Source: Eutreptiella sp. 'Long Island Sound 2002' (Eukaryota > Protista > Euglenida). From it: 64,000 bases of DNA. The notes beneath the pieces were generated by a model, which worked only from the letters and a program-made list of their open reading frames with translations, had not been told where the DNA came from and did not search any database. Position 1 is the first letter of the stretch; the number at the start of each line of letters is the position of its first letter. Made by a program: the position numbers and the translations under genes. Below are positions 5,733-47,329 of this stretch, piece by piece. The stretch lies in NCBI GenBank assembly GCA_964036045.1, contig OZ038378.1:78616001-78680000 (forward strand). Direction: 5' to 3'.

Positions 5733-5789
5733 AGTTGTCGGCTGCGCAATTTTGTATGCGCCTACAGATCATATTGCATAAAACAAGGG

Positions 5790-21478: not shown

Positions 21479-21740
21479 ATCAACCCCCCCGCCGCCGTTG
21501 TCCACACAAAATTTTTCACAGGAAACCCCCCCCCCCTGTGACCCACCCATCCCCCCGCTCCCCCCACTATCGGGTGCTTTCCAGCCCCCACCCCCCCCCA
21601 AGGAAAAATGGCGCCACGGAAAACACAACCCCCCCCCCCGTTTGGAAAAAAATTGCACACTTGTTGTTGACAGCAGTGTATATGACAACTTCAATTTGAT
21701 TCTAATTTTGGTTGTTTGAGCCAACAATTTGTTTATGTAC
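21479..21740 (-). repeat. About 250-bp dispersed repeat, copy A (inverted relative to 46242-46489)
   Basis: The reverse complement aligns along its length with 46242-46489 (GTACA.AAACAAATTGT.GGCTCAAACAACC...GTGGACAACGGCGG...GTTGAT). Confidence 0.9.
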
Positions 21741-22490: not shown

Positions 22491-22581
22491 GATGTTCTGT
22501 GGCCTACGAGGACCATTTTATTTGTGGATGCAAATTTAACTGATGCCAATTGCAATGGTCATGATGCTGTCCCCTGAGATG
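22491..22581 (+). repeat. About 90-bp segment repeated directly at 45982-46073
   Basis: Shared GATGTTCTGTGG...ACCATTTTATTTGTGGAT...TTTAACTGATGCCAATTGCAATGGTCATGATGCT.TCCC.TGAGATG. Confidence 0.85.
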
Positions 22582-26400: not shown

Positions 26401-27960
26401 AGGCCCTGATGACCCAACCGGCCCTCCTGCCGGCCACTGACGGAGCACTCCGGCAGCAAGCCGGTGGTGGGGGCATAGTGTTCTATGCCCCTGGCGCAGG
26501 AGTGGTCCTGTGCGCGTGGTTCGGCTGCCTCGTGTGGGCCTCCCCTAGCTCCATGGAGTGGCTCGCCCGCTTGGTCGCCCTCGCCTTGCTGGATGGATGG
26601 AAGGGCACTCTCCTCTCCGCCCTCGATGCCACATCCGCCCTCTTCCGCTCCTACACCCGGCAGCCCCCCCAGTTCACTCTCCTTGACGCCCTGTGGCGCC
26701 GACTCATCCCCACGCTGCTGCACCTCGAATCCCACCACGAGCTGTGGCTTCGCGCTCAGCACGATACCACCGACCGTGACATTCTGGCCTCCCTCAACAG
26801 CATGGCCCACTCCCTCGCCACCCGGGGTGCCCGCGCGGCCACCCCCTGGACGATTCCCGTGCTGCCCCATCTCCATGAGCGCCTGGTGCTGTTTCACTGT
26901 GGAGCCCTCCTCCTTGACCCCGAGCTCGGCCTTGATGCCGCTTACCATGCGGCGGCCAGTGCCGCCTACTTCACATAAGGCCGCGAGACGTGTCTCCGCC
27001 CTGACGGAGCCGACTTCCTGGCGCTGCTGGAGGGCGACCAGCTGCCGACAGTGGCAGCCAAGCGCGCCTTCGCCTACCGCATCCTGGAGTGGCACCCACC
27101 GCCTGCCCTTGACATCCCCATGGAGTGCCACTTTTGCGCGCTCACCCACCCCCAGCTGGCCCGCCACGTGCGCAGTCGCTGCATGCCAGCATACCAGCGC
27201 CTCCTGTGGGCCCAGGCCATCGTCCTGCAATCAGTCCCTGCCGCCCAGGGGGGGTATGTATGCCCTGACGGCACCCTGTACTCGTCAGCCGGACGCCCCC
27301 TCCTACGGTGCACATGGGACGGCCTCTTCCTGAACACCGACATCCTGCCCGACACCGTCACCCTATCTGGCCTCTGGTACCCTGCCAACGGCACAGGCAG
27401 CTCCCCACTCCTGCCTGTGAAGTGCCGTGCCCTCGTCCAACGCGTTACCCAAGCCCTGGCTACCGCAGTGCCCGACCTGCCGACCGTCCTCAACGAATGG
27501 GCTGCCTTGCAACCCCGCCTTCGACCCCCGCCGTACACTCCGCCGCAGCACCTCCCGGTGTCCGCGGACCGCTCTGGAGATAAACTATGTTGGGAATATT
27601 CTATAACTATGGCCTTGCTGGTGCGAGGGCGGGTCAAGTGGCGCGTGCGCTGGTCAGGCCCCCTCCAGGTGGCCCTGCCCGTCGAGCCCGATTGGCACCC
27701 GGCGGAGGCCACTACCCTGGTAGCGGCACCGCCCGCGCGCCTGCCTTGGGCGCTGGCTCAGCTGGCAGACCTGTCCGCCCTGCGCTCCTCCGGGGGCTAT
27801 GCCCTCCTCACAGGTGAATCACCCGGGAGCGCGGCGCTGGCTCTCTTAGAGCCTATGCAGCCACACCCGATCCGGGGCTTGTGGCTCTACGTCAGCCCTG
27901 GAGTACCGCACACTTGGCCCTTGTGCGGCGATCTGCCGCCCACAGCGTGAACACTCGACA
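23500..27960 (+). mobile_element. Non-LTR retrotransposon (LINE) with RT, RNase H and CCHC finger; frameshifted
   Basis: RT: SAGLDQ.P, IDKNKPNP..HRPVTLTS, DPADAF, GWNQGDNPS, SYSDD, LPMVQGGPG. RNase H: ATDGA..GGGIV, SMEWLA, LDATSA, WLRAQH..LNSMAHSLA. Finger: CHFC-x9-H-x4-C. The 5' limit (Pro/Ser-rich ORFs from 23567) is approximate. Confidence 0.88.
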
Positions 27961-29184
27961 GTAAAGAAATTAGAGGCATCCCCCGCGTTGTGCCTGCTAT
28001 GTGTGTGCCCCCCGCCTGCTTGCCTGATAGGAAGCCAGATGACCCCCCCCGGGAACACCCCACCCCCCCGGGAACGCCCCACCCCGAGAGACACAGACGG
28101 GGAAGGGGGGCGACGTGAGACCGAAGACCCTGAGCCCCGGCGCCCAAGGCATGTGGGACAGGCGCGGCAAGTCCGTGTGACCCGGCATGCGCCGAGGACA
28201 GCCAGGGCGCCGTGCCCCGCGCGCTCCGCACCCGACACCCCAGCCCAAGCCCTGCCCGCGCGCACGCCTACACACAGGACGACGGTATCTTCCGCCCACC
28301 AGCGCTTCAGTGGGGTCTGGTGGCTGTCGATAGTCCGCTCGGCCTTGGAACCGGACAGTCAGGTTGTTGAGCCTCGTGGTGGGGCAGGGAAGGACGCCCA
28401 CACCCGAGGGCCTGCTCCTGCACCAGGCCGCCAGCCCAACCCAACCCAACCCCCCCCCAACCCACTGTTCACGGGCCCTACAGTGCCAACACATTGCAGC
28501 TCATCCGGGAGAATCACGGGTGTGGGGTTCAGTATTTCGTAGACGGGGTGCTGAACCGTCGAGCGATGTACCGGTTTGCGGTTCAGCAGCCCAAGAAAAA
28601 CGCCCTGCAGGTTTGGCAGGAGGGCATGCAAATTAGCCGTTGGCATTTCCTCAGAAGGGACGGGGAGCGTGCAGTGGTGCTTGAAATCCTGTGTGCTACC
28701 CCAAAACCCCCCCGTATCCCCAAGCCGGCCCCATAACCTGTGCCTCGTCGGCCGCTGCCCCCTCCGCCAAGTGATCAGGTGACGCTGACCCAGTATAGCA
28801 CGCACCGCCGTACCTCACTCCTCCCACCGGCTCCGGCACCAAAGCGGCCATGCGCCACCCCGCAGTACGGTTCATTGCTCCCGCGGCGTGCGTGTCAGTC
28901 CGCCCCGCCACCGGTGAGGCCGCAATTTGGGTCATTGCTCCCTACGCAAGCCCCCCTGCAGCGACCCCAGACTTTGGCGAGACGTTCGAATTTCTAGCCC
29001 TTCGGCCAGTGTGCACCGAGCGTCTCTTACACATAGGGGACTCTTCCAAATGGCTCCAAAATGGCTCCCCAAGAGCAAGTATGGTCCAAAGCCCAAGCCA
29101 CAGGCCACGGCACCACCCGGGGGTGTGGATTTTGTTATGATCCCACCGCAACCCTCCTCACCACCACCACCACCACCACCATTG

Positions 29185-29845
29185 CGCGCCCCAGACCCGC
29201 AGCACGCCGCCCCTGTCCCGGCCATGGCGCCAGCTGACTCGGGCGCGCCACAGGGTGCTCCACCCTCTGAGGCCCATCGAAAGCATGCCGTAGAGCCGCA
29301 GCAATGCGCCCCCGTCCGGGCCATGGCGCCAGTGGACGCGGGCGCGACACGGTGCTCCACCCTCTGCCCTGCGAATGTGTGCCCCAGAGCCGCAGCAATC
29401 CGCCCCCGTGGCGGCCATGGCGCCGTTGGAGTCGGGCGCACGACAGGGTGCTCCACCCTCTGCCCAGCGAATGCGTGCCCCAGAGCCGCAGCAATCCGCC
29501 CATGTCCCGGCCATGGCGCCGTTGGACTCGGGCGCGCCGCAGGGTGCTCCCCCCTCTGCCCATCGAATGCGTGCCCCAGAGCCGCAGCAGTCTGCCCCCG
29601 TCCCGGCCATGGCGCCGGTTGACTCGGGCGCGCCGCAAGGTGCTCAACCCTCTGCACGACCAATGCGTGCCGCTGAGCCGCAGCAGTCCATCCCCATCAA
29701 GGCAGTGCCGACAGCTGCCTCGGGTGCGCCACAAGGTGGTCAACCCTCAACACAACCACTGTGTGCCGCTGAGCCACAGCACTCCACCCCTGTCCCGGCC
29801 ATGGGGCCGGTCGACTCGGGTGCGCCACAAGGAGCTCAACGCTGA
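29185..29845 (+). repeat. Coding tandem repeat, 96-bp / 32-aa unit (EPQQSAPVPAMAPVDSGAPQGAPPSAQRMRAP), about 7 copies
   Basis: Directly visible in ORFs 28927-29622 and 29375-29845. It lies immediately upstream of the helicase frame. Confidence 0.9.
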
Positions 29846-29887
29846 TCACAACCATCATGTGCCGCTCCGCCACAGCAGCCAGCACTG

Positions 29888-32800
29888 TTGCCCACTTGGG
29901 GCACATTGAACAACATGGACTACGGTCCTGATGACAACCTCGTGGAAGGGTTTACACAACGGTGGCTTGACCGCGACAGGTTTGTGACCAAAGCATCAGA
30001 GGTGTACACTGTCCATGAGATGGAGGCTGCTGAGGTGTGGGCAAACAAGAACGGCATGAAGCGGAACGTGGCCTTTGAGGAATGGTGGCCCCAAGATGAT
30101 GGCGATGAGGATGGGAATGTGCCCCCACAGCCACAATGGGCCTCCCTAATGGAGGTCTGGGGCAACTATGAGCTGTCCGATGGTGACATGGTGCATGGCT
30201 GGATCACTGCCAACCACAACTGGGACACCTTGAAGCCGGACTTCGAGGCGAGGGTGCATGGAGATGGCATCTCAGGACAGCGTGTTTGGATCAGCTGTGC
30301 TAATAAGCCACACGCCAATCTCACTGGCACCTATTGCTGTAAGGTTGTCTCCGACACAGGTGCCTTTCGCGCCTTGCGTAGGGAGATCCAGCACGGATTA
30401 GCATGGCCCAAACTGCTGGCAAACATCCGGGCCGAACCAAGGGACACGCCTCCCCTGTCAAACGAGGACCACGACATCTTGAAACACCTTGTCAAACGCC
30501 ACGCGTTGAATCCCTCACAGGCGTTGGATTTGCGGCAGGTGTCGGATGAGTCTTGCATCACAGCATTGAATGGAGGTGCTGGCACAAGGAAGTCAGAGAC
30601 CATGGTGGCATGCATCAAGGCCGTGCTATGGCAGCAAGGCCTCCTGGTCGCCCAGAACCCCGATCTTGCTCACCTGGGAACGTTCAACAGGGGCAGGAAG
30701 GTGGGGGGACCTGAGGAAGATACCCAACCCCCCGCATGCGTGTTGGTGACTGCACCCACGAACGCACAAGTCGACATGTTGTTGGCACGCGTGCACGAGG
30801 AGTGTTACAAGGACAGTGTGTTTCGTGAGAAGGTGCTTGGTGACCACCCAGCCCCCTGGTTGCGCCTCCGAGCCCAACGGGCTACCGCCCCACCAAGCCT
30901 TGCACCTTTCGACCAGCTGAAGGTGCAGGAGACCTTGGGGCGCACCGCAGGTTGCAAGGCTACCCTCAAATGTGCGCTCAACTCTTGCTGTGTGCTGTTT
31001 GCCACGGCTGGGATGCTTGCTACCCGGCACAAGATGCTGCTTGGGAAAGGGAAGGAAAAAACCAGGTTTGCGTTTAGCTTTGTGGATGAGGCGTGGAGGC
31101 ACATCATCCCCCTGGGCCTGGACTTAGCCGCCATGCTCAGCCAATGTCTGCTGTGTGGTGACCCCGGCAGTTGCGGCCCTACAGCCACGTCCAGCTTTTG
31201 GCAAGTGCGTGTGAGGATGAGAAGGCTGAGGTACTCCCCGAAGCAGTGGCATGGCCAGCGGATGACACCTTCAAGTTCAACGGGGTTATAAGGCACTCTC
31301 CTGGCCCGCAAGTGCATTGGCATGATTCGCATCGGTTTTGCACCACCAGCACCTTGCAATTCTTTTCGTACTGCACGCGCTGCCGGGCCAGTATCCTGGT
31401 GCAACAGTACCGGATGACCATGCCACGCTCATGCGTGCCTTGTTTACGGGGGGCGCTGTTGGCCACTACCACTCATTTGAGAACCCCCTCCCCGACCCCA
31501 TCCTAAACAACCCCATCCGCATTGTGGACCTCAATGGGCCCACCTGGTGGGAGGAGTTGGAGCGGACTTTGGGGGCAGAGAACCTAGGTAGAATGTTCAA
31601 TCATGTAGAGGAGGCATGGGCCAACCTGCGAATGGATCCGGTGTTGCTAAACAAGGGGGGCCTGAGCATGGAGGAGGGTGTGCTGGTGTGCCATTTTTTG
31701 GAGTATGCTGTCAGGAGAGGCACCTACCAAGCACAGTCGGTAGCGGTACTGACGACTCACTATGCGCAGATGGTGGGCTCCAACACTCCGTGAGGTTTGT
31801 TGGTCGCAAGTGGCAGGCCCACCCGGTAAACCTTCTGACAACGGTTGCGACCCTCCATTGGTTCTAGGGGCTGCAAGCCCGAGTGATCCTGGCCTCCCTG
31901 GTGTCCCCGACACCAGGGATCATGCACGACACCTGGCGGTCAAACACCCTGACCAGCAGGGCGCAGTAGGAGCTGCACCTCTTCGGGCGGTGTACAGAGT
32001 GGACCAACCAGCTCACCCCTGGTGTATGGGTGAATGCACTGCACGCGGTGTAGTGGGAAGCAGGCTCCAGGACTGTGAGCGACACTCTTCAGCTGGCAGG
32101 GGTTCTGAGGGAGGCCGCAGCTGTTGAGAGGATTGTGCATGGCACAATCTACCGGTTGGCCGGGGGGGTGGTGGGGCACAGGCTGTGGAAGCCATGGCAG
32201 AGGCACAAGAGGGCACGGGACCCATGGGGGTATGCACCAGGCAGTGCGGATCAGTTGCTTGACTTTGAGCGCATCATGGCCAACACTCGGAAGGATGAGG
32301 TGTCAGTCCGTGTCAAGGATGCACTGGGGAACATTGTGAACCCCCGCCATCTGGGGGTCATCCTACCTGACTTCACCGAATGGGCGCTCCTGTACGTCCT
32401 GGTTGAGGACGATGGGCAGGATTCGGGGGACTGGGGGGGCCTGGTGAGGGTAACCAACACATCCAAGCTTGACCTGTGGGAGCAGCGACTCGTCCAACAC
32501 TTGGTGGGAAAGCCCTTCTACCACAAGCAGAAGTACCGAAATCAAAACACAGTAGGGACGTAACGGACGATCAACCTGCCCTTGTGGCAGGACGCGTACA
32601 ACTGCTTGGATTCGCTGCCGTTCTTGTCAGGGGACTTCCGCACCCCTATTGGGGTGTACGTGGCGTCCCTGTTCCATGGGGTGGACCGCTGCCCTAGGAC
32701 CCTTGGGGTGTGAGCACCAGTTTAGGTGCACGAGGAGGAAGCCCCCCTTGGGTGGCGCAAGCTGCCCCACGGGGTGAAAGATTACGTTTTGGGGCGCCAC

Positions 32801-33138
32801 TAAGTTGACCCTCTGAGGCAGCATGGTTTCCATGCAGGCCTGACCATGGCGCCAAGCGTGCATGTTGTCTAACCCTGTCTGTAGAAGAACATGCATTGAC
32901 CCATGACGTTTGACCATCCCTGGCACATCACGAGAGTACCAGTCACAGCACCACCGGGAAGGGGTACACACATGTGATCACCACCTTGTTTGCTGCTTTG
33001 TACGTTGACTATGTTTGCCTGCAATGGTACGAGTGTGCCCATGGCTGCCTACCCAAGATTGAAGGAGGTCTCCAAGGTCTTCAGACAATGTCCACGTGGG
33101 GTTGCCCGAAAAGGAGGTTGAAGACACGCCAATGATAA
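29888..33138 (+). pseudogene. UPF1/SEN1/DNA2-like superfamily 1 helicase (AAA_11 + AAA_12) with unknown C-terminal extension; decayed
   Basis: LNPSQ (Q motif), GGAGTRKSET (Walker A, G>R), LVTAPTNAQVDML (Ia), FVDEA (Walker B), GDPG|QLRP (III, frameshift), LVQQYRM (IV), VAVLTTHYAQ, TVATLHWF*GLQARVILASL (V) and RSNTLTSRAQ*ELHLFG (VI). Coding-like text continues to TGA TAA at 33133-33138. Confidence 0.88.
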
Positions 33139-33165
33139 TTGACATTCGACAATGATAAATGACAA

Positions 33166-36100
33166 TTGACGGATGTATGTCCGTCAAATATTTAGGGGGC
33201 CGACACCCCCAAAATGTTTGACGGATGTGTGTCCGTCAAATATTGGGGGGGTGTAGACCCCCAAAATATTTGACGGATGTGCGTCCGTCAAATTTTGGGG
33301 GCTGTAGACCCCCAAAATATTCGACGCAGGTACGTCCGTCCGATATTTTGCGGGTGTAGACCCCCAAAAATATTTGACGGATGTACGTCCATCAAATATT
33401 GGGGGGGCCTACACCCCCGAAATGTTTGACGGGTGTGGTTCCGTCAAATGTTTGGGGGGTGTAGACCCCCAAAATATTTGACCAATGTGCGTCCGTCAAA
33501 TATTTTGGGGGTCTACACCCCCCAAATATTTGACGGACGTACATCCGTCAAATATTTTGGGGATGTAGGCGCCCCAAATATTTGACGGACGCACATCTGT
33601 CAAATATCTTGGGGGTGTAGGCCCCCCAAATATTTAACGGATGTACATGCGTCAAATATTTTGGGGGTGTAGGCCTACGCCCCCAAATATTTGACGGACG
33701 TACGTCCTCAAATATTTGGGGGGTGTGGACCCCGAAATATTTGACGGATGTGGTTCCGTCACATATTTGGGGGCTGTAGACCCCCAAAATATTTGAGGGA
33801 TGTGGTACCGTCAAATATATTGGGGGCTGCAGACCCCCGAAGTATTTGACAGATGTGGTTCTGTCAAATGTTTGGGGGGCCGAAACACCCAAAATATTTG
33901 ACGGATGTGGTTCCGTCAAATATTTTGGGAGTGTAGGCCCCCCAAATGTTTGACGGACGCACATCCGTCAAATATTTTGGGGGTGTAGGCCCCCAAGCAT
34001 TTGACAGAACCACATCCGTCAAATATTTTGGGGGTGTAGGCCCCCCAAATATTTGACGGACGTACATCCGTCAAATATTTTGGGGGTGTAGGCCCCCCAA
34101 ATATTTGACGGATGCACGTCCGTCAAATATTTTGGGGGTGTAGGCCCCCCAAATATTTGACGGACGCACATCCCTCAAATATTTTGCGGGTGTAGGCCCC
34201 CAAAATATTTGACGGATGTACGTGCGTCAAATATATGTGGGGTGTAGACCCCCAAAATATTTGGCGGATGTGGTTCCGTCAAATATTTTGGGGGTGTAGG
34301 CCCCCCAAATGTTTGACGGACGCACATCCGTCAAATGTTTTGGGGGTGTAGGCCCCCCAAACATTTGACAGAACCACATCCGTCAACTATAGCCTAGGCC
34401 CCCCAAATATTTGACGGACGTACATCCGTCATATATTTTGGGGGTGTAGGCCCCCCAAATATTTGACGGACGCACGTCCGTCAAATATTTTGGGGGTATA
34501 GGCCCCCCAAATATTTGACGGACGCACATCCGTCAAATATTTTGGGGGTGTAGGCCCCCCAAATATTGGACGGACGTACATCCGTCAAATATTTTGGGGT
34601 TGTAGGCCCCCCAAATATTTGACGGATGTACATGCGTCAAATATTTTGGGGGTGTAGGCCCCCAAAATTTTTGACGGACACACATCCGTCAAATAATTTG
34701 GTGGTGTAGGCCCCCCAAATATTTGACGGATGCACGTCCGTCAAATATTTTGGAGGTGTAGGCCCCCCAAATATTTGATGGACACACATCCGTCAAATTT
34801 TTTGGGGGTGTAATCCCCCCAAATATTTGACGGAACCACATCCGTCAAATATTTTGGGGGTCTACACCCCCCAAATATTTGACGGACGTACATCCGTCAA
34901 ATATTTTGGGGCTGTAGGCCCCCCAAATATTTGACGGACGCACATCCGTCCATTAGTTTGCGGGTGTAGGCCCCCCAAAATTTTTGACGGACGCACATCC
35001 GTCAAATATTTTGGGGGTGTAGGCCCCCCAAATATTTGACGGACGGACATCCGTCAAATATTTTGGGGGTGTAGGGCCCCCAAATATTTGACGGACACAC
35101 ATCCGTCAAATATTTGGGGGTCTACACCCCCCAGATATTTGATAGATGTACATGCCTCAAATATTTTGGGGGTGTAGGCCCCCCAAATGTTTGACGGACG
35201 CACATCGGTCAAACATTTTGGGGGTGTAGGCCCCCCAAATATTCGACGGACGCACATCCGTCCAATATTTTGGGGGGTCTGCACCCCCCCAACATTTGAC
35301 GGACGCACATCCGTCAAATGTTTTGGGGGTGTAGGCCCCCCAAATATTTGACTGAACCACATCCGTCAAATATTTTGGGGGTGTGCACCCCCCAAACATT
35401 TGACAGACCTACATCCGTCAAATATTTGGGGGGCCTACACCCCCAAAATTTTTGACGGACGCACATCCGTCAAATTTTTTGGGGGTGTAGGGCCCCCAAA
35501 TATTTTACGGACGCACAGACGTCAAATATTTGGGGGTCTACACCCCCCAGATATTTGACAGATGTACATGCGTCAAATATTTTGGGGGTGTAGGCCCCCC
35601 AAATGTTTGACGGACGCACATCGGTCAAACATTTTGGGGGTGTAGGCCCCCCAAAGATTCGACGGACGCACATCCGTCCAATATTTTGGGGGGTCTACAC
35701 CCCCCCAATATTTGACGGACGCACATCCGTGAAATATTTTGGGGGTGTAGGCCCCCCAAATTTCTGACGGAACCACATCCGTCAAATATTTTGGGGGTGT
35801 ACACCCCGCAAACATTGGACAGACCTACATCCGTCAAATATTTTGGGGGTCTACACCCCCCAAATATTTGAAGGAACCACATCCGTCAAATATTTTGGGG
35901 GTCTACACCCCCCAAATATTTGACGGAACCACATCCGTCAAATATTTTGGGGGTCTACACCCCCCAAATATTTGACGACATACATCCGTCAAATATTTTG
36001 GGGGTTTACAGCCCCAAAATATTTGACGGCCGCACATCCGTCAAATATTTTGGGGGTCTACATCCCCCCAATATTTGACGGACGGGGTTCGGCCAAATAT

Positions 36101-37846
36101 TTGAGGCGTGTAGACCCCCCAAATATTTGACGGACGTACCTCCGTCAAATATTTGGAGGGCCTACACCCCCAAAATATTTGACGGATGTGGTTTCGTCCA
36201 ATATTTGGGGGGCCTACACCCCCAAATTATTTGACGGATGTGTGTCCGTCAAATATTTGGGGGGCCTACACCCCCAAAATATTTGACGGATGTGGTTTCG
36301 TCAAAAACTTGGGGGGTGTAGACCCCCGAATCATTTGACGGAGAAGCGTCTGTCAAAAATTTGGGGGGCCTACACCCCCCAAATATTTGACGGATGTACG
36401 TCCGTCAAATATTTGGGGGGCCCAAACCCCCAAAATATTTGACGGATGTACATCCGTCAAATATTTGGGGGGTGTAGACCCCCAAATGTTTGACGGATGT
36501 ACATCCGTCAAATGGTTGGGAGGCCTACACCCCCAAATTATTTGACGGATGTGCGTCCGTCAATTATTTGGGGGGCCTACACCCCCAAAGTATTTGACGG
36601 ATTTGGTTTCGTCAAATACTTGGGGGGTGTAGACTCCCGAATTTTTTGACGGATGTGCGTCCGTCAAAAATTTGGGGGGCCTACACCCCCAAAATATTTG
36701 ACGGATGTACGTCCGTCAAATATTTGGGGGCCCAAACCCCCAAAATATTTGACGGATGTACATCCGTCAAATGGTTGGGGGGCCTACACCCCCAAAAAGT
36801 TTTACCGATTTGGTTCGGTGAAATATTTGGGGCGTGTAGACCCCCCAAATATTTGACGGACGTACATCCGTCAAATATTTGGGGGGCCTACACCCCCAAA
36901 ATATTTGACGGATGTGGTTTCGTCAAATACTTGGGGGGTGTAGACCCCCAAATTATTTGACGGATGTGCGTCCGTCAAATATTTGGGGGGCCTACACCCC
37001 CAAAATATTTGACGGATGTACGCCCGTCAAATATTTGGGGGGCCTAGACTATATTTGACGGATGTGGTTCCGTCAAAAATCTTTTTGGGGCCTACACCCC
37101 CGAAATATTTGACGGATGTGCGTCCGTCAAATATTTGGGGGGCCTACACCCCCTAAATATTTGACGGACGCACATTCGTCATATATTCTCGGGGCCTAAA
37201 CCCTTAAAATATTTGACGGATGTGCCTCCGTCAAATATTTCGGGGCTGTAGACCCCCGATATATTTGACGGATGTGGTTTCGTCAAATATCTGGGGGGTG
37301 TAGACCCCCAAAATACTTGACGGATGTGCGCCCGTCAAATATTTGGGGGGCCTACACCCCCAAAATATTTGACGGATGTGCGTCCATCAAATATTTCGGG
37401 GGCCTACACCCCCAAAATATTTGACGGATGTGCGTCCATCAAATATTTGGGGTGCCTACACCCCCAAAAATTTTTGAGGGATCTGCGTCCGTCAAATGTT
37501 TGGGGGGCCTACACCCCCAAAATATTTGACGGTCGTACATCCGTCAAATATTTGGGGGGGCTACACCCCCAAAATATTTGACGGATGTGCGTCCATCAAA
37601 TATTTCGGGGGCCTACACCCCCAAAATATTTGACGGATGTGCGTCCATCAAATGTCTGGGGTGCCTACACCCCCAAAGTTTTTGAGGGATCTGCGTCCGT
37701 CAAATGTTTGGGGGGCCTACACCCCCAAAATATTTGACGGACGTACATCCGTCAAATATTTGGGGGGCCTACACCCCCAAAGTATTTGACGGATGTGCGT
37801 CCGTTAAATATTTGGGGGGCCTACACCCCCAAAATATTTGACGGAC
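33166..37846. repeat. 4.7-kb palindromic satellite, 52-bp unit, about 90 units
   Basis: Unit AAATATTTGACGGA-(6-nt loop)-TCCGTCAAATATTT-GGGGG-(7-nt loop)-CCCCCA. Both halves are hairpins and share the self-palindromic AAATATTT. Copy number is estimated as length divided by unit size. Confidence 0.97.
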
Positions 37847-38181: not shown

Positions 38182-39772
38182 GTGCCACTGAGCCGGCGCA
38201 CTTCGTTTATTGTCATAGCGCTAGCGCTCTCCACAACAAACCCACCCACAACGGCGTCTCTTGGACCAGCTGGTGAGCCTGAGGACAAGCCCGGCTGGCA
38301 GTTTGAGTACCAAGGACCTGCCCTTGATTGCCCCCCCGAGTTGTGGGAGCCCCATAGTGGTCACGGTTGTTGACCTTGCAAGCCACGAAGGTCACCCAAA
38401 CCTCTAACAGCCGTGGTGCACGAGCCAAGCAATGGACCAGCCTCCTGAGTGGCCACCGCAGCGCTTGATCGAGCCCGCAAGAATGAAGTATGCCCTAATG
38501 CTGGCCACAAGAGGGGTGGGAGGCCACGCTGGGGGTGGCCGGGCGCCGATGGAGACGGTTGAAGGACCGCATGGCCTCGTGTGACCTTGACGTGGTGAAT
38601 CCGCATGGTTGCAGGGTATTGTGCCGGTTCATGTACACCGAGCATGGGTTTGCCATGCCCACCATGCATGATGGGGGTAGCCACGTGCACTACCGGGAGG
38701 TTGCCACAGAATTGTGGGAACAACTTGCAAAACGAAACAGTGGCCGGCCAGGCAGTCGTAAGGCCGGTGCTATTGCCAGGTGGCCGTCAAGTGTGAAGAT
38801 AGCAGAGCAAAGGGAGGTTTGGTGTGAACTGGTGCGTGCCCTACCTTTGGTCGACGAGTGGCCGTTCTGGACTGGGGACGAGGCATATCCCACCACTACC
38901 ATGGGTTACTTCTATGACAAGGCTATTCGCCACGCTACGCCTGGCCCATATCTGTGGTCCCAAGCGACAAGTGTGCCCAAACCACTGGTGAGCGACCTGT
39001 TGCCAGGCCCCAAGGCGCCTCTGCCCGTTGGCGCAACTCGTTGCTGCCTGAGGCTGCGGACTCACGTGCGTGTGTCACTGTCAGACAGACACGGCAAGAG
39101 CGCTTTGACCAAGCGTTGCTGCAAGCCGCCCATGGGGCAGCCCGCTGCCTCACGATTGCATGCCAGGGGATACAAGAGCAGTGCAAGGAACCATTGACCG
39201 AGGACAGCCTGGTGGCAGCATACACGCTGGGTTGCCACTTCGCCAATAGCATGCGGGTGCCCATGCAAGACTGCAACGAGCTGTTGATGCGTTGCAGCCC
39301 CTTTAGCCCACTGGTGCCAAACAGTCACCCCGGCCATCCGCATGCGGCCGTACGGGTTGTGGACAACGCGTGGAGGGATGATGGAGGTCTTGAGATGTTG
39401 CAGCTACTAGTGGAGGAGATGGAGGCGGCCGGTGTACAGCCTGCATACACCCAACGATTAAGTCCACAAGGGCACCCTGGAGGTGACCCAAGTGACTCCA
39501 CGTCCTCTGCCGTAGCGCAGGGGGTTGGAGCGGCGGTGCTCATGGCAAGAGACCCCTCAGGCGATGAGTCTGTGACTCCCACTTCGTCCTCCCTGGCACA
39601 AGGGCGTGGTCCCCCGGCAGGTGCACAAAGTGTGGATAGCCCTGGTGAGGTGTTCAGTCCACCTGACCCCCCCCGGGTGGTGCGACCGACTCCCCGGCAT
39701 GTGTTGGACATGGAACACCAGACCCCAGGTCCCAGGTCTGCCCCACCGATGAGTCACCTATTGCATCCATAG
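38182..39772 (+). pseudogene. Unknown coding-like N-terminal region of the hAT-linked multidomain frame
   Basis: Overlapping ORFs 38535-39197 and 38954-39772 read as globular protein (YREVATELWEQLAKR, WCELVRALPLVDEWPFW, RVVDNAWRDDGGLEMLQLLVEEM) and are joined by a frameshift. No family recognised. Confidence 0.45.
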
Positions 39773-40269
39773 TAGACCCTACAGGGGTTCTCACGCCACA
39801 CTCCCCAAGCCCCCACCCTGCGTGTTTGACACCGGCGGTTAGTGATGGAGGGGTGGCGAGTTCCTTGGAGCAGTCTCCTATACCACTTGCACAGAAACCC
39901 AAGGAGCCAGCTGCTGTGGACTGTACTCCTTCTAGCACAGGCACTGTGGCGACAGTGAAGGCAGTCAGTCCAGTGCGGATTCAGGGTCGACCCCGGTTGA
40001 ACACCCCAGTTCATTGGCGACAGTGAAGGCTTGCAGTCAGTCCAGTGCGGATTCAGGGCCGACACCGGTTGAACACCCCAGTTGATTGGAACAGAGCCCA
40101 TGGAGCAAGAAGCGCCCAGGGGTTACACCCCCAAGTAATGGGGCTGCCGTGAAACGTGGCAAGAAAGAGCAAGGCGCAAAGACAACTCCGATAGATGCTG
40201 ATGCTATTGCATTGGACGACGTGGATCAAGAGCCCAACAAGGCCGAGGGTGGCAGAGTCCTACCAACCG

Positions 40270-40790
40270 TGAGGTCCTTGAAGCTTCGCATTCTTCCGGA
40301 CCAGTACGTTGCAGGGGCATGTTTCTACTATGCCGTGGCCCAAAGCCTGCATGCTATTAGCAGCAACGCCCCGTTGGACAGCGCATCGCTGCGGGCAAAA
40401 GCCATTGCCGTGTTTCGCGACATGTGTGGGCTTTCAGTTCAAGAGTCTGCACTATCTGTGAACCGGGATCTTGAGAAGGACACATGGCATGGCCGGCCCC
40501 AAGGGGGAATGCCTGAGCACTTTGCTGCCTTGGCGCAGCATGTGGATGGTAGTGTGGTGTTGCTGCGATCAAACAGGTTCAACATTGTGACGTCAGGGTT
40601 TGGGATGGACAGCGCGTTGACATCCGCTGCTATTTGGGTGCTTGGACGGGAGAATCCGCTGCACTTCCATGACTGTGGGGATATGGAGGAGCAGTGCCAC
40701 CGCGCGATGGTGGTGGTTATTGCCGGGGCGGAACGAGATGGTGTCAAAGGAGGTGGTCATTTCCGGGGTGCAGTCTTTGACCATTCGCTG
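40270..40790 (+). CDS. OTU-like cysteine protease domain within ORF 40086-41405
   Basis: YVAGACFYYAVAQSL...SASLRAKA (catalytic Cys codon 40320-40322), QGGMPEHFAALAQHVDGSVVLL (WGG.E..ALA box) and GGGHF (His, 40758-40760). Confidence 0.72.
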
Positions 40791-40929
40791 CAGGTAGCCC
40801 CCTTTTGCACGTTGCACGGGATCATGGGCATCTTGCCATACAAGCGTGGGCCGGTTGGGGGGTTTAGAGCGTGGCATTTGCAGCTAGGGGTTGGCGGTAT
40901 GAAGGGCCACACCAACGCAAAAGACTGCC

Positions 40930-41400
40930 GCCGCACTCGTCTAGTGCAACAGACGCGCACTTACAAGCCACTTGTGACCCTGGTGAACAAGATGGCAAGG
41001 CAGATGTTGTCTGATTGGTTCACATGGACCACCATGCGATTGTCTTGCACTATCCTCACAAAACCGCATCAGCGTGTGCATGACACGTCCCCTTGGTGGG
41101 CAGTGTTTTCCACCGGCCAGCACACGCGGGGACACTTATGGGTGGAGGTGGGTGGTGTATCTAATGGTCCGGGTGGACGGGGATGTAGTATGCAGTGCTT
41201 GGATGGTGTTACACGGGATGGCGCCACGTACGATGTATGCCAGCAACCGGTTCTCGTACGTACCGGTGCATGGCATGGCACTTGTTCTTGGCACGGGGAG
41301 AGGAGGTTGGTGGTGTTGTACTCCCGTGGTGACTGGCGGACACTCCTGCCGTGGGACCGTGCATTCCTCAATGAGACCGCATTCCGCTTACATGCAGGTG
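40930..41400 (+). CDS. 2OG-Fe(II) dioxygenase domain, TET/JBP-like, fused in frame to the OTU domain
   Basis: FTWTT..L...TKPHQRVHD...FSTGQHTRGHLWVE...YDVCQQPV...WHGT.SW.GERRLVVLYSR gives the DSBH pattern with distal His (41274-41276) and the 2OG-binding R-x-x-V-x-Y. The proximal HxD reads HQR, so it is non-canonical or mutated. Confidence 0.68.
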
Positions 41401-41429
41401 CATAGTGGGCCACTTGGTGGAGCACCGTG

Positions 41430-42310
41430 GCGACCATGGGGAACGGAGAATCCATATAGGTACAACTGGTGTTGGTTGGGTACCACGCTGCAGTGCCTGT
41501 TGGTGGCGTCGGGTGGACATGGAGGATAGCACGCAAGATGCCTGGACGAGGAGGGTGTCTGGGGACCATTGTGGCAGGGTGTTGTGGCACATGGAGGAGG
41601 TGGTGCATACAATCCACAGGACATTGCTGAGAGGCTAGCCATGGAGGATGCCATGTGAGAGACGGTGTGCCGATGCAGCGGACGATGCAAGTGCAAAGCC
41701 CCCGCACCAAAATTCCAATGGATGCGGCAGGCAGAGATGGCGGAATGTTGGAAGTACATGGTGCCCAAGCTCACGGCCGCTGGGGCGGTTGCTTTGTCAT
41801 GTTGTTTGTCCTACGAGCAGTTCTGGCAATACTCTGGTGCCTGTGGGGTGAAGGTTCCGCGGGAGGGGGGGGGAGACAGGCATGCCAGCGCAGGCACGGC
41901 ATGTGATGAATCAGGGGCAGAGTGTACGACAGCGCGTGAAGGAGGGAATGAAGGGGCAACCGGTTGGGTTACCTGATAACCCCCCCCCCCCTTGTCCGTG
42001 TGGGAGTGACCTGAGGGAGGCAGCAATGTATGCATCTTTGGTGTTCAATGAGGTCGTGGGGTTACATGTCCATAACCAATAGGAGTACAAGTTGGTTGTG
42101 GACCATGAGTTTCTCGATTGCTTGGGATGGAAATGGTCCTTGCATGCCATGGTGTTGCACATTGGATCAACGAGGGAGGAGGGTCACTTTGTGGTGTATG
42201 TCGTTTCCAACGACAGGTGGTGGCTCTGTAACGACACCACGGTGAAGGTCATGACCCCCCCCTTGACCCGCGAAAAGCGACGTTTCTGCTATACAAACGC
42301 AAACAAACCG
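41430..42310 (+). pseudogene. USP / peptidase C19 deubiquitinase domain, broken by stops and frameshifts
   Basis: Cys box GTENPYRYNWCWLGTTLQCL (Cys 41470-41472), YNPQDIAERL (QQDA.E-like) and His box WSLHAMVLHIGSTREEGHFVVYVVSNDRWWLCNDTTV (His 42185-42187). Confidence 0.82.
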
Positions 42311-42379
42311 ATTTGGTTGTACCAGACATGTCGCAGTTTGCCTCCCAACGGACAGGACCCCCAGCCCTTGGTCAGACAC

Positions 42380-42645
42380 GGGATGCCCATAGCACACCTA
42401 TTGACACCTCGGTGCAAGCCATGGCGCTGGCACCAGGTGCGCCCCCCCTCCCCTCCTTCAACACAGGGTGCATCAAGGGTTGGGTACAGGCAGAACAGGC
42501 CTATGCATGCCCAGAGCGTGCCTATGGACGCCTCTGTGCCAGCCACGGCGCTGGCACGAGGTGCACCCCCCCTCCCCCACCTGCAACACAGAGTGCATCA
42601 AGGGTAGGGGACCGGAACATGAGTGTGCATGCCCAGAGCATGCCC
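42380..42645 (+). repeat. About 122-bp coding-like tandem repeat linking USP and transposase, about 2.5 copies
   Basis: (C/G)ATGCCCA(G/T)AGC recurs at about 42382, 42506 and 42628, encoding D.SV.A.ALA.GAPPLP. Confidence 0.7.
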
Positions 42646-42705
42646 GATGAGATGTGTGTGGCTGCCTCGGCGCCGCTATAGACGTCCTCAGAATTTGTTG
42701 AGGCA

Positions 42706-45300
42706 GTGGCACAGTTGCTGCAGAAGCGCAAGGTGCGAGTGGCAAGGCATCTGAGAGTGCGTGCTGAAGCACACCAGATGCAACTTAGAGCGCGGCATGC
42801 AAAAGAGTGGGATGCGCGGCATGCAGAGCATGGCATGTCACAATCGTTAGTGGCACAGTCAGTGGAGCAGGACAGGTTGAGGTCTGTTGCATTGGCCGCA
42901 TCAGGGAAGGATGCATTGTGCGTGTTGATGCAGGCCACTCCCATGCAACTGGACAGTGGTCCGAAGACACTACAAATGTTTGTAGCCGCTCATTGGCAGT
43001 ATCAATTCACGACAAGTGGGGGTGTTGAGTGTGTGTGTTGTGCGTGGGCTAATGTGTGTGGCATTCCTGGGGTGGCGCGTACCCCTAAGACCAGTGAAGC
43101 CTTGGTATTGGGAACATATGCTGCAGGGAAGCGCATGAAGACCTTTGGCCCAAAAACGTGGCGGAAGGAGGTGTTGGAAAGCCACTTGGGGTTATCACGT
43201 GGCAAAACATCAACGCGAAAGAACTTGCGTAGGCCAGCGCACCACCACCGACTGGCCGAAGACAGTTTCAAGCTGCATTGTGCAGAGCGATATCGCGCAT
43301 TGTGCCCCAGTGCTGCTGCCACAGCTGACGTGGTGGGAGGGAACATTGTGTTCATCAGGGGGGAAGCCATGGACATTGGTGTGGCTATGTCGGATGCTGA
43401 GGCAGCCATTCTGTAACGGTTGGTTGAGGTGTATATTGGGTTACGCATGTGCACTTCCATCCGTGCTATAAGTGAGCGCATCCTTCTGCACTGCTCTCTG
43501 ACATCTGCCCCTGGGCACCATGCATCACGGCGGTGGATAGTTGAGAAGGCCATTGCAGCAATGCATGATGCCATGCAAGATGAGGTAGCGCACACCTTAT
43601 TCTTGGCATCGTCCATTGCAGTGTTGCTTGACGGCTCGGATAGGCAGAGGCATCGCATCAATGAGTACGCCATTCTGCTTATTTTCCCGGAGACTGGCCC
43701 TGGGGGCATGTGTGAGGTGTTCCTTGGTGTGGTGGATGTGGCCTGTGGTGATGCGCATGAGGTTGCAACGCAGCTAGAATGCGTCCTGCTGTCCTAGATT
43801 CCTGACCGTGATTGGTGGGCAAAGAGGGTAGTGACCTTTGCAGTGGACGGGGCTTCTAACCTTGTTGTGCGAGTTGCCAGTGCGCGGCAGGTTGTTGATG
43901 TCTCTATCATTGAGAGCAATGTGTTTGCCTTGATACGGAAGTGGTTAGGGTTGATGACACCCTTGGGTGAGCCGTGCCACGTGTTGCAGCGCAAATTGGG
44001 TCTTGCATTGGAGGCTGCTAGCCCAACCCATGTTGATTACTTGGCGGCCGTCAATCGGCAAGGAGGCTTGTACAATGGGGCACGGCAGTGGAAGGAGTTG
44101 CAAAAGTGTGTGCAAAAGCATGTGCAGGATAAACGAAGTGGCTTGCAGCTCATCCCCACAAGTCATCGCATCAGGTGGTCACAGGCGCATGCATGGCGCA
44201 ACACTGCTTTTTTGGCCAATGTCCTTTGGGTGGCACGACACTTGGATTCCAAGGTGCAGCATTCTACCAAGGAGGAGGATGTGTGGGAGGACTGCCATGA
44301 TGCCAGTTTGCTTGCATGGGGGGTGGTTTATGGGGACATCCTGCATGGCATGCGTTGTTTTAACAGTGTGGCACAACTACGTGCGCCCACTGGTGCACAC
44401 TTAGCCACTGCAACAGGTATGCTACAAGCCTGGTTGCGGAGGGTGGCTCGCAAGGAGGGTCCAGGGTGGTTGCAATTCAAGGAGTAGACTGTGACCGGTG
44501 CGTGGCGTGGTGTGCAATTGGTCCAGTTTGATTCAAGTGGGCAGAAGTGTGCAACAACCCCTCCTTTTTCAGGCGTTCAGGCGCGTGCAGTGACTGATAT
44601 GTTGCTTGCAGGCATCAAGGAGGGGCAGGCAACCATTGACCCCAAGGGGGTGTTGGAGTGCGCAGTATTGTTGGACCATGGCCGTTTCGTTGCCCTCCCG
44701 GTCAATGAGCGTGCTGCATATGGGGTGGAGCAGTTGCGTCCGTTCATGGCTTCATACCAAGAAGAGTTGCGCGCAGCACATGTGAACTGTGACCGTGCCT
44801 TGGTAGAGTGGGAAGGCCTTAAGGAGCACATGCTGCAGCACTTTGCAACTGTGCAAATGTCCAAGATGTGGGAGGCATTGGCACCTGAAAGGGCACATGC
44901 ACAGTGGGTGAATGTGTGGCGCGTTCTCGCATTATTGCGAACATATTGCCCCGCTGAAGCTGCAGTAGAGCGTGCCATCTCTTTGCGTGGGAGGTTCTAC
45001 GGTAGTATGCATGACACTGTTGAGACACATGTCCTCAGCATGTGCATGGCATTGCATTCCAACTTGCCCCCTTTACAGCAATGGGCAAAGGGACAAGGCG
45101 TTGCAGTGGCACGCCACCTGGCTGCCCATGCACGCTTCGATCTGCGCCCAAGACAGAGGGTTTCAAGGAAGGTAGGGGACAGAGAATCTGTGGAGGCTGC
45201 AATGCTTCAATGTCTGCAAGGTTATGAAGCAGTGGCTGATGATGGTGACAGCCTGCCCATTCTTTGGAGGGCCAGGTACACCACTGAGGTCAACGGCACC
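42706..45300 (+). pseudogene. hAT-superfamily transposase (ZNF862/DUF4371-like) with N-terminal TTF-type zinc finger
   Basis: One frame with three in-frame stops (43414, 43795, 44485). Motifs: GVECVCC...LESH...HHHR (ZnF), VLLDGSD (D1), EVFLGVVDV, FAVDGAS (D2), PCHVLQRKLGLAL, IRW and YCPAEAAVERAIS...LSMCMALHSN (dimerisation domain, catalytic E). Confidence 0.88.
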
Positions 45301-45960
45301 CTCAGGAAAGGCCACAGAACGGCACCAGGCAGATGTGGTCAACACTGTTGCATCCGATGGGACCCGTGACTCGCATGCTGGCAACCATGACTTCATCACT
45401 TTTCGCAGAGGTATGGAGTGTGCCACATGCAAGAAGGAAGTTTGCATCTGGTGCAATACATGTCTGGTGTGCCATGCATGCGTTTGCGCAAGTTCCTTGT
45501 GGGAACGTGGTGGTGAATGTTGTAGATGATGTCTGTGATGAGGGGGAGAACAATAGAGCAGACTAATTGGCCACACCACGCAAGCCAAATAAGGGGCGTG
45601 GTGTGGCCAGGATGCGGGCGAAATTGGTGATGGCAGCGCAGAATGGCAGGCTGCGTGATTGGTCAAAGGGGGCGTTGTTGAATTGTGTGGATGTGCTTGG
45701 TGTGAAGGTGGCAGGTAACAGCAATCGGCGGGAACTGCGGGACCTTGCTACGCAGCAAGCGTTGCCATTATTGCAAGAATGGGATGCCTTTGTGCCGGAC
45801 ACAGACCGTGTCACCCGTTCTGCGGCACCACCAAGCAGCTCCCAGCCAAGTTGCTCGCCGCCAGTGGATGTCATGGATGGACTCATCGATGAATGTGAGG
45901 ATGCCCACGTATTTGCATGTGCCTTTTTGTTGTTGTGTGCTGTCTTCGAAGATTTTTCCC
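45300..45960 (+). pseudogene. Cys-rich segment and HeH/SAP-like motif downstream of the hAT domain
   Basis: CATCKKEVCIWCNTCLVCHACVC (about 45418-45490), then WSKGALLNCVDVLGVKVAGNSNRRELRDLA in ORF 45567-45983. Confidence 0.45.
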
Positions 45961-46189
45961 ATTTTCCCTGTTGGCACATCTGATGTTCTGTGGCGTTACC
46001 ATGACCATTTTATTTGTGGATCTGAGTTTAACTGATGCCAATTGCAATGGTCATGATGCTATCCCTTGAGATGTTTCCCGTTTTCCCTGTTTGGCACATT
46101 TCCCCCACGTTTCCCATTTGGTTTTCAGTGCTACATATGGCTTTTTTGTGTGGTGGTCGTTCAACTTTCCCACTTTTCCTGCTCCCACA

Positions 46190-46238
46190 TTTTCCCCTTT
46201 CCCCTTTCCCCTTTCCCCTTTCCCCTTTCCCCTTTCCC
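46190..46238. repeat. (TTTCCCC)n simple repeat
   Basis: Seen directly. Confidence 0.95.
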
Positions 46239-46241
46239 AAA

Positions 46242-46489
46242 GTACACAAACAAATTGTCGGCTCAAACAACCAGAATCAGAATCAAATTGAAGTTGTCAC
46301 ATACATTGCTGCCAACAACAGGTGTGCAATTGTTTTCCAAACGGGGGGGTCTGTGTTTTCTGTGGCGCCTTTTCTCCTTGGGGGGGGGGGGGGGGGGGGC
46401 TGGAAAGCACCCAATAGTGGGGGGGGGGGATGGGTGGGGGGGGTTTCCTGTGAAGAATTTGATGTGGACAACGGCGGGGGGGGGTTGAT
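46242..46489 (+). repeat. About 250-bp dispersed repeat, copy B
   Basis: Inverted homologue of 21479-21740. Confidence 0.9.
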
Positions 46490-47082
46490 TTAGGCATAGT
46501 TTCTCCCAATTTCCTCTAGGCATGGGACCCCTAGACCCACCTCCAGTACATAAGAATATCAGACATCTTCTTGGACAGACCGCACACACAACATCCCTTA
46601 TCAGACATCAGACATCAGACTTTATGCACATAGCTGGTCAACAAGTTTTGATTGTGCAGCCAATGGGGGGCTGCCCGGGACCCGACCCTTTACGCCGACC
46701 CCCCCGCTCTCCCTAGAAATTGGCCGGAAAGTGCCGGACCATGGGCGCCAAAGGTGCCCTAAGGAAAATTTGCTTAATCTCGTAGAGGGTCAAAAATTGC
46801 GTTTTCACCCCACGTGTCTGCACTCAAAACACGCAGTTCTTTGAAGAGAACTCAATAATCGATGAAAACCAAAGTGGACCAAATATCAATACCACCCATG
46901 TGCAAAGGTTTGTCAGAGATGACCCATAACCTAGTGGGTGAAGCACTGCCTTTGAAGCTGAAAGGTTCTGGGTTCAATCCCTAGTGGGGGCAATCTACAG
47001 GACTCGAGGAAGGATGAGGGACACAATGGAAAAAAATTTTATGTTTTTTTTGGTTTGTTTTTGGTGCTTTGAATTTATACCA

Positions 47083-47329
47083 TTTGTTGGGGAACCCCGA
47101 GAATGCAAGGGTTATGTAGCATTTCTGCCCATTTTTGGCCCCCGAGGAAGGCAAGGTTGGGCAGCCAATTCTGATTTTGTCCCCTTTGTTGGGGACCCTC
47201 GGGAATGCAAGGGTTATGTAGCATTGCCACCCTCTTTTGGGCCCTTGACAAGGGAGAGGTGCGGCAGCCAATTCTGAATTTGTCCCTTTTGTTGGGGACC
47301 CCCGCGAATGCATGGGCTATGTAGCATTT
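47083..47329. repeat. About 102-bp tandem repeat, about 2.5 copies
   Basis: TTTGTTGGGGA.CCC...GAATGCA.GGG.TATGTAGCATT at 47083, 47185 and 47288. Confidence 0.9.

Follow-up and report, generated by a model that had tools for sequence, protein, structure and literature searches.

Transposons that carry enzymes suited to counter silencing are known mostly from fungi, in which TET/JBP genes are found in KDZ, hAT7 and other elements, and from Helentrons, which carry a deubiquitinase. MULE and CACTA elements carry Ulp1-type proteases (C48 SUMO protease) as conserved cargo; they differ from the element described here in transposase superfamily and in protease family, and they have no dioxygenase or helicase. 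Our subject is a 64-kb window (the whole stretch analysed, 64,000 nucleotides, positions 78,616,001 to 78,680,000 of contig OZ038378.1) from the euglenid Eutreptiella sp. 'Long Island Sound 2002'. An array of coding remnants in this window probably belongs to a dead copy of a high-copy, autonomous hAT (Buster-like) DNA transposon (25,272 bp in this copy), of which it forms the right-hand 8.4 kb. The element has three coding units on one strand, namely a helicase gene and the open reading frames (ORFs) ORF1-2 and ORF3.

TET-carrying hAT elements are already known from rust fungi, namely the TET+ hAT7 transposons of Puccinia (Kojima 2025, PMC12730594). These are hAT elements bounded by terminal inverted repeats (TIRs), with a TET/JBP-type dioxygenase gene upstream of the transposase gene and in the same orientation, an arrangement like the one seen here. 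They make 7-bp target duplications and cluster with Ac/Tam3-type elements, and the paper does not mention deubiquitinase or helicase cargo (PMC12730594). In contrast, the Eutreptiella element has an 8-bp duplication, a Buster-like transposase, a length of 25 kb, a helicase gene and a satellite. Its dioxygenase-like sequence is the C-terminal domain of a 1,050-aa protein without a Pfam Tet_JBP match, and a ubiquitin-specific protease (USP) domain is fused to its transposase. Dioxygenase-cargo DNA transposons of another superfamily have likewise kept a base-modifying dioxygenase, which is thought to act on silencing methylation, but their hosts are fungi and ubiquitin-system domains are not mentioned for them.

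Helentrons carry protease/deubiquitinase domains (the VTD family, earlier annotated as OTU; PMC9741609, PMC11417382). The likeness is a papain-fold deubiquitinase-type domain within a eukaryotic DNA transposon's own ORF. Helentrons, however, are rolling-circle elements with a Rep/helicase protein, whereas here there is a DDE transposase, with a USP (clan CA, C19) as the confirmed deubiquitinase and a merely suspected second domain of OTU-like type. As for the transposase, the best fold and language-model matches are Buster-clade hAT transposases and their derivatives (ZNF862, ZMYM1/6, ZBED5, FAM200, GTF2IRD2, KIAA1586), which share the D...DGAS...ER motifs. The present protein differs from these in being too diverged for the Pfam models DUF4371 and Dimer_Tnp_hAT and in having an N-terminal USP and a C-terminal Cys-rich extension, and the element is about ten times the usual hAT size. 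A literature search of a limited library found no hAT element with a transposase-fused USP, a UPF1-like helicase gene or the four-part set. The element joins the dioxygenase and deubiquitinase ideas in one hAT and adds the helicase and the USP-transposase fusion, with the parts under selection.

The insertion within the window is complete. It runs from 21365 to 46636, has CAG...CTG inverted ends, and is flanked by an 8-bp target-site duplication (TSD). From left to right it consists of the 5′ subterminal region, a high-copy region, a GC-rich block, the helicase gene, the satellite, ORF1-2, ORF3 and the 3′ sequence. The features of its ends are these:
21357–21364, unstranded: 5′ TSD, GTCAACAA; the 8-mer is found twice in the window, the other copy being at 46637.
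21365–21378, + strand: 5′ TIR, CAGCTCTGTGTATA; 12 of 14 bases match the reverse complement of the 3′ end.
21379–21740, unstranded: 5′ subterminal region, with CAGACAT repeats at 21396–21414 and an inverted copy of 46242–46498 at 21469–21740.
45984–46636, + strand: 3′ untranslated and subterminal region, about 650 bp; the 3′ inverted repeat ends ...CACATAGCTG.
46637–46644, unstranded: 3′ TSD, GTCAACAA, a perfect match to 21357–21364.

The 5′ TIR stands directly after the 5′ copy of GTCAACAA, and no other site in the upstream 46 kb has 12 or more of 14 bases matching the reverse complement of the 3′ end. The terminal repeats, CAGCTCTGTGTATA and CAGCTATGTGCATA, agree at 12 of 14 positions and have the CAG/CTG termini (YARNG type) of hAT elements, the fifth base being T, not G. 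The 8-bp length of the duplication, seen in one copy with both ends, is likewise that of hAT elements. The 3′ end, ...CATAGCTG, lies at 46636 in the window and is identical in four copies from two subfamilies (the window, L004, L001 and L006), in four unrelated flanks. CAGACAT repeats are found just inside both ends, and self-BLAST reveals an inverted subterminal repeat of about 270 bp (21469–21740 against 46242–46498; 84% over 277 nt, minus strand). In DNA runs of the source organism, the bin 21294–21490, which contains 21365, is where word depth at the 5′ end climbs, from about 250 to roughly 13,000. Thus, the GTCAACAA copies at both flanks, the matching ends, the subterminal inverted repeat and the depth step indicate that the window holds one complete insertion. 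The TIR bounds, the 8-bp duplication and a DDE transposase, analyzed below, together point to cut-and-paste transposition. The preliminary description of this DNA took 38182–46075 as the unit and left its TIR and TSD to be defined. With the 12/14 inverted ends and the 8-bp GTCAACAA in place, the unit becomes 21365–46636 and includes the helicase gene and satellite upstream of the array.

The array lies on the + strand at 38.2–46.1 kb. It is without a long intact gene, yet it is homologous throughout to long ORFs of other copies. A search with the 439-codon frame at 40086–41402 found 56 relatives in one ENA assembly, most of them 76–92% identical and a second group about 52% identical. L001, one of the second group, has three clean same-strand ORFs of 370, 578 and 1,618 codons, and in tblastn these cover window positions 38571 to 45893 with their order unchanged. 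Measured against them, the window has at least nine in-frame stops and at least five frame changes (38571–39002 in frame 0 to 39014 in frame 2; 41871/41873; about 42256–42286; about 45257–45327; about 45485). The window copy is dead. The tiling bears out a co-linear + strand coding array at about 38.5–46.0 kb that is broken by point stops and frameshifts, as had been described, and the search for intact copies that had been advised found them: P0370, of 1,048 aa, for ORF1-2, and ORF3s of 1,465–1,618 aa.

The organization of the intact copies is as follows. In subfamily A, a single frame holds both ORF1 and ORF2; the intact P0370 runs from the N-terminal domain via a repetitive linker to the dioxygenase-like end. 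ORF2 ends with TAG. After a further 37 nt in subfamily A, or 40 nt in subfamily B, ORF3 opens with an ATG in a different frame. L001, L004, L005 and L006 all keep this stop-spacer-ATG junction; in the window the ATG has become ACG. A single read-through polyprotein, which had been proposed at about 2,500 codons, is rejected because of this conserved junction.

The arrangement is shared by two old subfamilies. The window, L002, L003 and L004 (subfamily A) are collinear at 81–91% from the helicase through the 3′ end, and L001 (subfamily B) is collinear with them from ORF1 to the 3′ end at 63–70% nucleotide identity. Nonsynonymous and synonymous divergence (pN and pS) were compared between L001 and L004 or the window. 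In the transposase core, pN is 0.15 and pS is 0.64. ORF1, the protease-like domain, the 2-oxoglutarate (2OG) dioxygenase-like domain, the USP and the transposase N-terminal region have pN of 0.24–0.32 and pS of 0.62–0.80, and the linker has 0.34 and 0.49. The pN/pS ratio is thus 0.23–0.44 across ORF1, the protease-like domain, the 2OG domain, the USP and the transposase, with pS saturated at 0.62–0.80. Because synonymous sites are saturated, the true ratios are lower still. As pN is well below pS in the labelled domains, these domains have been kept by selection in the transposing lineage.

These data bear on the possibility that the array is a composite, with separate mobile elements or captured host gene fragments lying beside a hAT transposase. 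Nested inserts do occur in the family (a piggyBac-type insert in L002, a LINE at L006), and the GC-rich block is present in few copies. Order and strand, however, are constant in two saturated subfamilies, each block is under purifying selection, and a single TSD encloses all of the blocks; an internal deletion in P0025 is also what would be expected of one element. We regard a composite as very improbable, and an origin by nested insertion of the domains is rejected given the shared order in two synonymous-saturated subfamilies and the purifying selection on each block. The preliminary description had envisaged a giant hAT-type transposon with extra enzyme domains as one conserved unit, and the nested-insertion test that it set beforehand left that proposal standing.

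The inserts themselves are copy-specific. In L002, a 5.2-kb insert at 13929–19142 (window equivalent 43119) places a piggyBac-type gene (Pfam DDE_Tnp_1_7) inside the hAT transposase ORF. In L006, a LINE-type element at 2126–6169 (RVT_1 and Exo_endo_phos, minus strand) adjoins a 5′-truncated copy of subfamily B. P0025, on a 168-kb contig, is an internal-deletion derivative with a 566-aa ORF in which the protease-like region runs directly into the transposase's C-terminal part.

The family is abundant. Four protein clusters at 90% identity contain 144–231 member sequences each, from different contigs, and the full-length ORFs in them are of 1,048, 1,465 and 1,473 aa. Over the array, word depth sums to about 10,000, compared with some 31–40 for single-copy contigs; word depth is not a copy number, and abundance is stated here as 'hundreds' only. 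The family is also present in sequence runs that carry the labels of a second and of a third organism. Some copies may be active still, to judge from the intact ORFs. Hundreds of copies and several intact ORFs make this a tractable system for studying transposon-borne base oxidation and deubiquitination versus silencing, and the element is useful for asking how a hAT transposase moves 15–25 kb of cargo. It also carries a warning for annotation, since the ORFs mostly escape Pfam and hundreds of pieces are unnamed or called 'hypothetical protein' in public protein collections.

Profile searches, which had been suggested as a check, were run with Pfam on all stop-to-stop pieces and on the intact ORFs of L001 and L004. 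The only matches were to UCH and to AAA_11/12. The first of these lies in ORF3, which is about 1,470–1,620 codons long when intact (full-length proteins of 1,465, 1,473 and 1,618 aa are known). In the window, ORF3 has the following parts:
41443–42300, + strand: USP deubiquitinase domain, with the mutated start ACG (41443–41445), putative Cys box WCWLGTTLQCL (41467–41499) and His box GHFVVYV (42182–42202).
42301–42690, + strand: repeat linker, with a 124-bp tandem repeat at 42408–42649 (found with TRF).
42691–43590, + strand: transposase N-terminal region with a Cys/His cluster, CVCCAW (43030–43047) and HHHRLAE (43240–43260); pN/pS 0.38–0.39.
43591–45230, + strand: hAT-type DDE transposase core, with D in LLDGSD (43624–43647), D in AVDGAS (43840–43860) and E in AAVERAIS (44959–44982).
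45231–45983, + strand: tail, with a Cys-rich motif (45419–45481), a SAP-like stretch (about 45567–45893, unconfirmed) and the stop.

The USP identity of the ORF3 N-terminus is confirmed at the level of sequence. The window's domain matches Pfam UCH (PF00443) with E 1.4e-7 and 31.8 bits, above the gathering cut-off of 23.9, and PF00443 scores 24–32 bits in six copies from two subfamilies (the window, L001, L002, L003, L004 and P0332). The match covers profile positions 196–254 of 254. That is, it always lies over the His-box end, where the His box and Asp region are present, and stops short of the Cys box. At ORF3 residues ~8–20 is a conserved N-W-C-W-L-G-T-T-L-Q-C-L, which resembles the USP Cys box GNTCYxNSxLQCL. 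The USP is in frame with the transposase in every intact ORF3. The linker that follows, noted earlier as a repeat and found to contain the 124-bp tandem repeat, is the least constrained segment of ORF3, with a pN/pS of 0.70.

No Pfam hAT model matches the transposase, and its assignment comes from structure and from neighbours. An AlphaFold2 (AF2) model has a mean confidence score (pLDDT) of 45.8 overall. Its core, at pLDDT 60–85, shows the order b1-b2-b3-a-b4-a-b5 followed by a long helical insertion; the D of LLDGSD ends strand 1, the D of VDGAS ends strand 4, and the E of VERAIS is in a later helix. In Foldseek searches, Hermes accounted for 11 of the top 13 PDB matches (best E 4.9e-4), and the top 24 Swiss-Prot models were all hAT-derived, ZNF862 being first at E 9e-9. 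VIA-align also ranked Hermes first, with Z 8.4 over model residues 35–543, which include both core halves. The model thus has a Hermes-like DDE RNase H-fold core with a helical insertion, at a pLDDT of 45.8 and a template modelling (TM) score under 0.25. The language-model neighbours, with a score of 0.91, are Buster-type hAT proteins carrying DUF4371, FAM200-ZBED5_RNase-like and Dimer_Tnp_hAT. The core has a pN/pS of 0.23–0.24. Its ...AVERAIS... sits at the position of the hAT C-terminal ...ER.FS motif.

Alternatively, the transposase could belong to another DDE superfamily that makes 8-bp duplications and has an insertion domain (P element, Zisupton/KDZ) and be merely hAT-like. This is very improbable. 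Two aligners both place Hermes first among solved structures, all 24 of the top Swiss-Prot models are hAT-derived, the language-model neighbours are Buster-type hAT proteins, and the CAG...CTG ends and the placement of AVERAIS fit hAT. What speaks for another superfamily is the missing Pfam hAT match, the low TM scores, and the fact that KDZ elements are the classic carriers of TET/JBP genes (PMC12730594). Based on the 8-bp duplication, the fold matches and the language-model neighbours, membership in hAT, in a divergent Buster-like branch, is accepted.

The transposase N-terminal region has no Pfam match, and its residue pattern makes a zinc finger possible. The tail has no Pfam match either; its CxxC...CxxCxxCxxC motif is conserved in the relatives P0124 and P0380 (27% identical). 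Exhaustive HMMER searches with the transposase returned family fragments and two distant relatives, P0124 (27%) and P0120 (35%), both without a Pfam match. P0124 as a query found only itself, and homology searches in general returned almost only copies of the element family. P0124 and P0380 are on contigs of 2.8–3.5 kb. They share the D...DGAS...ER and Cys-rich motifs with the transposase, to which they are 27% identical, and are without a USP, and P0380 has a CxxC...H...HH pattern with no profile match.

The earlier labels for ORF3 are thus to be revised as follows. The USP label is confirmed by the UCH match in the window and in five other copies, and the Cys-rich motif is real, being conserved in a 27%-identical relative. 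The hAT label stands on the fold search, the language-model neighbours and the 8-bp TSD, and lacks a Pfam match. ZnF-TTF and HeH/SAP have no profile match, only residue patterns, and are unconfirmed.

ORF1-2 lies upstream and has four parts in the window:
38571–39442, + strand: N-terminal domain; tblastn to L001 ORF1 with E 8e-33 and 4e-47; frameshift at about 39002–39014.
39443–40253, + strand: low-complexity repeat linker; 72-bp repeat at 39947–40089; an in-frame stop just before 40086.
40254–40784, + strand: Cys...His protease-like domain; VAGACFYY (40308–40331) and GGGHFRGA (40749–40772).
40785–41405, + strand: 2OG-Fe(II) dioxygenase-like domain; PHQRVHD (41064–41084), GAWHGTC (41265–41285), ERRLVVLY (41298–41321) and TAG (41403–41405).

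The N-terminal domain has a pN/pS of 0.39 at a pS of 0.80 and no Pfam match, and the linker is continuous with both flanking domains in P0370 and P0007. In the third part, the Cys and His motifs AGACF(F/Y)Y and GGH(F/Y)RGA, about 147 residues apart, are conserved in all family members of both subfamilies, and the pN/pS is 0.39–0.41. The preliminary description called this an OTU domain. The Asp that usually precedes the loop Cys in OTU is absent, and an OTU profile search gave no Pfam match among 16 members (E up to 10) and no PDB profile match. Nairovirus OTU chains are 7 of the top 50 Foldseek PDB matches, at a non-significant E of 0.2–0.9 with a model of pLDDT 33, which is unusable. The label is unconfirmed, its support being a motif resemblance and this weak viral recurrence on a poor model. 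The region is best named a Cys...His protease-like domain, in which an OTU relationship is suspected from the motifs.

As to the dioxygenase-like domain, the language-model neighbours of the C-terminal 188 residues of ORF2 score 0.95 with 198 shared features; they are unnamed phage proteins, the models of which resemble 2OG-FeII_Oxy_3 and Tet_JBP proteins. Among the nearest named clusters, 86 of 100 are in the Tet_JBP set. The conserved motifs PHQHxxD, GAWH and (D/E)RRLVVLY are in the order found in 2OG enzymes, with the first motif being HxHxxD, not the canonical HxD, and the pN/pS is 0.41–0.43. No Pfam, PHROG or PDB-profile match was obtained, and tblastn against phage genomes found nothing. 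The AF2 model of the protease-like and 2OG region (pLDDT 33) is unusable, and fold searches gave no significant match. The 2OG dioxygenase identity is probable, and an affiliation with TET/JBP is somewhat favoured on the predicted relationships. The earlier 2OG/TET-JBP label is supported by the language-model neighbours and not by any profile, and its TET/JBP part is a lead.

The half of the element upstream of ORF1-2 contains these features:
21741–24445, + strand: high-copy 5′ internal region; open frame at 23567–24133; word depth 900–21,000 in run X1.
24446–29182, + strand: GC-rich block (about 66%), lineage-specific cargo or a nested low-copy insert; right limit approximate.
29183–33166, + strand: decayed superfamily 1 (SF1) UPF1-like helicase gene, starting with a 96-bp tandem repeat (29183–29837).
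33166–37845, unstranded: internal satellite of about 4.7 kb; 90 copies of a 52-bp unit composed of two palindromes (TRF, inverted repeats).

The helicase remnant at 29888–31291 matches Pfam AAA_11 with E 5e-9. The homologous frame of L004 matches AAA_11 (3.8e-16) and AAA_12 (1.9e-11), the motor domains of an SF1 UPF1-like helicase. From at least 30191, the region is collinear with L002, L003 and L004 at 81–88%. In these three copies the satellite is at the same position, between the helicase gene and ORF1-2. Subfamily B has an unrelated satellite with a 41-bp unit at the equivalent position (L001 230–7667; L005 5266–7817), and the array length among copies is 2.2 to 7.4 kb.

Further to the left, the depths in run X1 may be compared with about 31–40 for single-copy contigs in the same run. 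The frames of 21741–24445 have no Pfam match. The GC-rich block has a depth of 200–630 over 24446–26800, about 1/30 of that of the rest of the element, and so is present in few copies. It has many long overlapping frames and no Pfam match.

Several points weigh against the picture of an autonomous 25-kb hAT element. Both ends have been seen in one copy only. The fetched loci were searched for another 5′ end and gave none, and no empty site was found. Compared with the rest of the element, the GC-rich block at 24.4–29 kb is rarer by a factor of about 30, and a typical copy is therefore not 25 kb long. The 5′ part of subfamily B, whether or not it includes the helicase, was sought and not recovered. 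The Pfam hAT models (Dimer_Tnp_hAT, DUF4371) match no copy at E up to 10, no Pfam OTU or Tet_JBP model matches any copy, and PDB sequence and profile searches with the element's proteins found nothing. Both AF2 models are of low confidence (pLDDT 33 and 46), and the evidence for a hAT fold consists of local alignment (3Di and amino acid) together with a Z that is middling, the TM scores lying below 0.25. In a check for RNA evidence, the runs that contain the sequence looked like DNA and showed no GT..AG joints. Finally, the activities of the accessory enzymes are predictions from sequence.

How might the parts work together? The DDE transposase would move the element by cut-and-paste, making 8-bp duplications. 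The dioxygenase would oxidise a modified base in the element's DNA, the deubiquitinase or deubiquitinases may reverse repressive ubiquitylation of chromatin or stabilise the transposase, and the helicase may act on RNA or DNA intermediates. As a tentative reading, short of an even chance, we suggest that the element profits from its accessory enzymes, the most plausible ways being a weakening of host silencing or a protection of the transposase. A more specific proposal is that the family has gathered a four-enzyme counter-silencing kit and retained it beyond the time that synonymous sites can register. The kit would consist of a TET/JBP-type dioxygenase for DNA bases, two unrelated deubiquitinases (one of them transposase-fused) and a UPF1-like helicase; by removing DNA and chromatin marks from the element's own loci, it would allow a 15–25 kb element to attain hundreds of copies. 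This we consider unlikely as a whole.

A competing view, of weight comparable to the silencing reading and itself rather doubtful, gives the accessory enzymes a part in transposition itself, or in regulating the element, in place of counter-silencing. On this view, the USP could free the transposase, or repair factors acting at the excision break, of ubiquitin or of a ubiquitin-like modifier. Gap repair or the copying of a 25-kb donor could be assisted by the helicase, and the 2OG enzyme could modify proteins or be of the repair type, and not be a TET/JBP base oxidase. Every intact ORF3 has the USP fused to the transposase, which is an argument for action in cis, and the fold-match hAT-derived proteins KIAA1586 and ZBED1 are named SUMO ligases in Swiss-Prot. 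Yet the distant relative P0380 is without a USP, and thus a USP is no core requirement of this transposase type. For the 2OG half, the metal motif PHQHxxD is not the usual HxD and the nearest clusters include 2OG-FeII_Oxy_3, which fits a repair-type or protein-modifying enzyme. On the other hand, 86 of its 100 nearest named clusters are in the Tet_JBP set, and among dioxygenases it is the TET/JBP enzymes that are known as passengers of DNA transposons (PMC12730594).

Some minor observations concern the satellites and the surroundings of the element. In L002, the C-terminal third of the helicase is inverted beyond the palindromic satellite (6685–7632 on the minus strand versus 1–1232), which suggests satellite-mediated inversions. 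Metagenome scans for the element's ends found no 5′ TIR, and the subterminal motif matched only unrelated microsatellites. In the window, Rfam gave no match, and no dinoflagellate spliced-leader relic was found when looked for. A 103-bp tandem repeat of 2.5 copies lies in the element's 3′ flank at 47070–47328. Outside the hAT element, an RT_RNaseH_2 frame (E 2.8e-9) at 15319–16047 is the remnant of a long terminal repeat (LTR) retroelement. Upstream of its subfamily B satellite, L005 has three CCCTAA units (4815–4835) and a repeated ORF-like unit of about 1.1 kb (853–4762).

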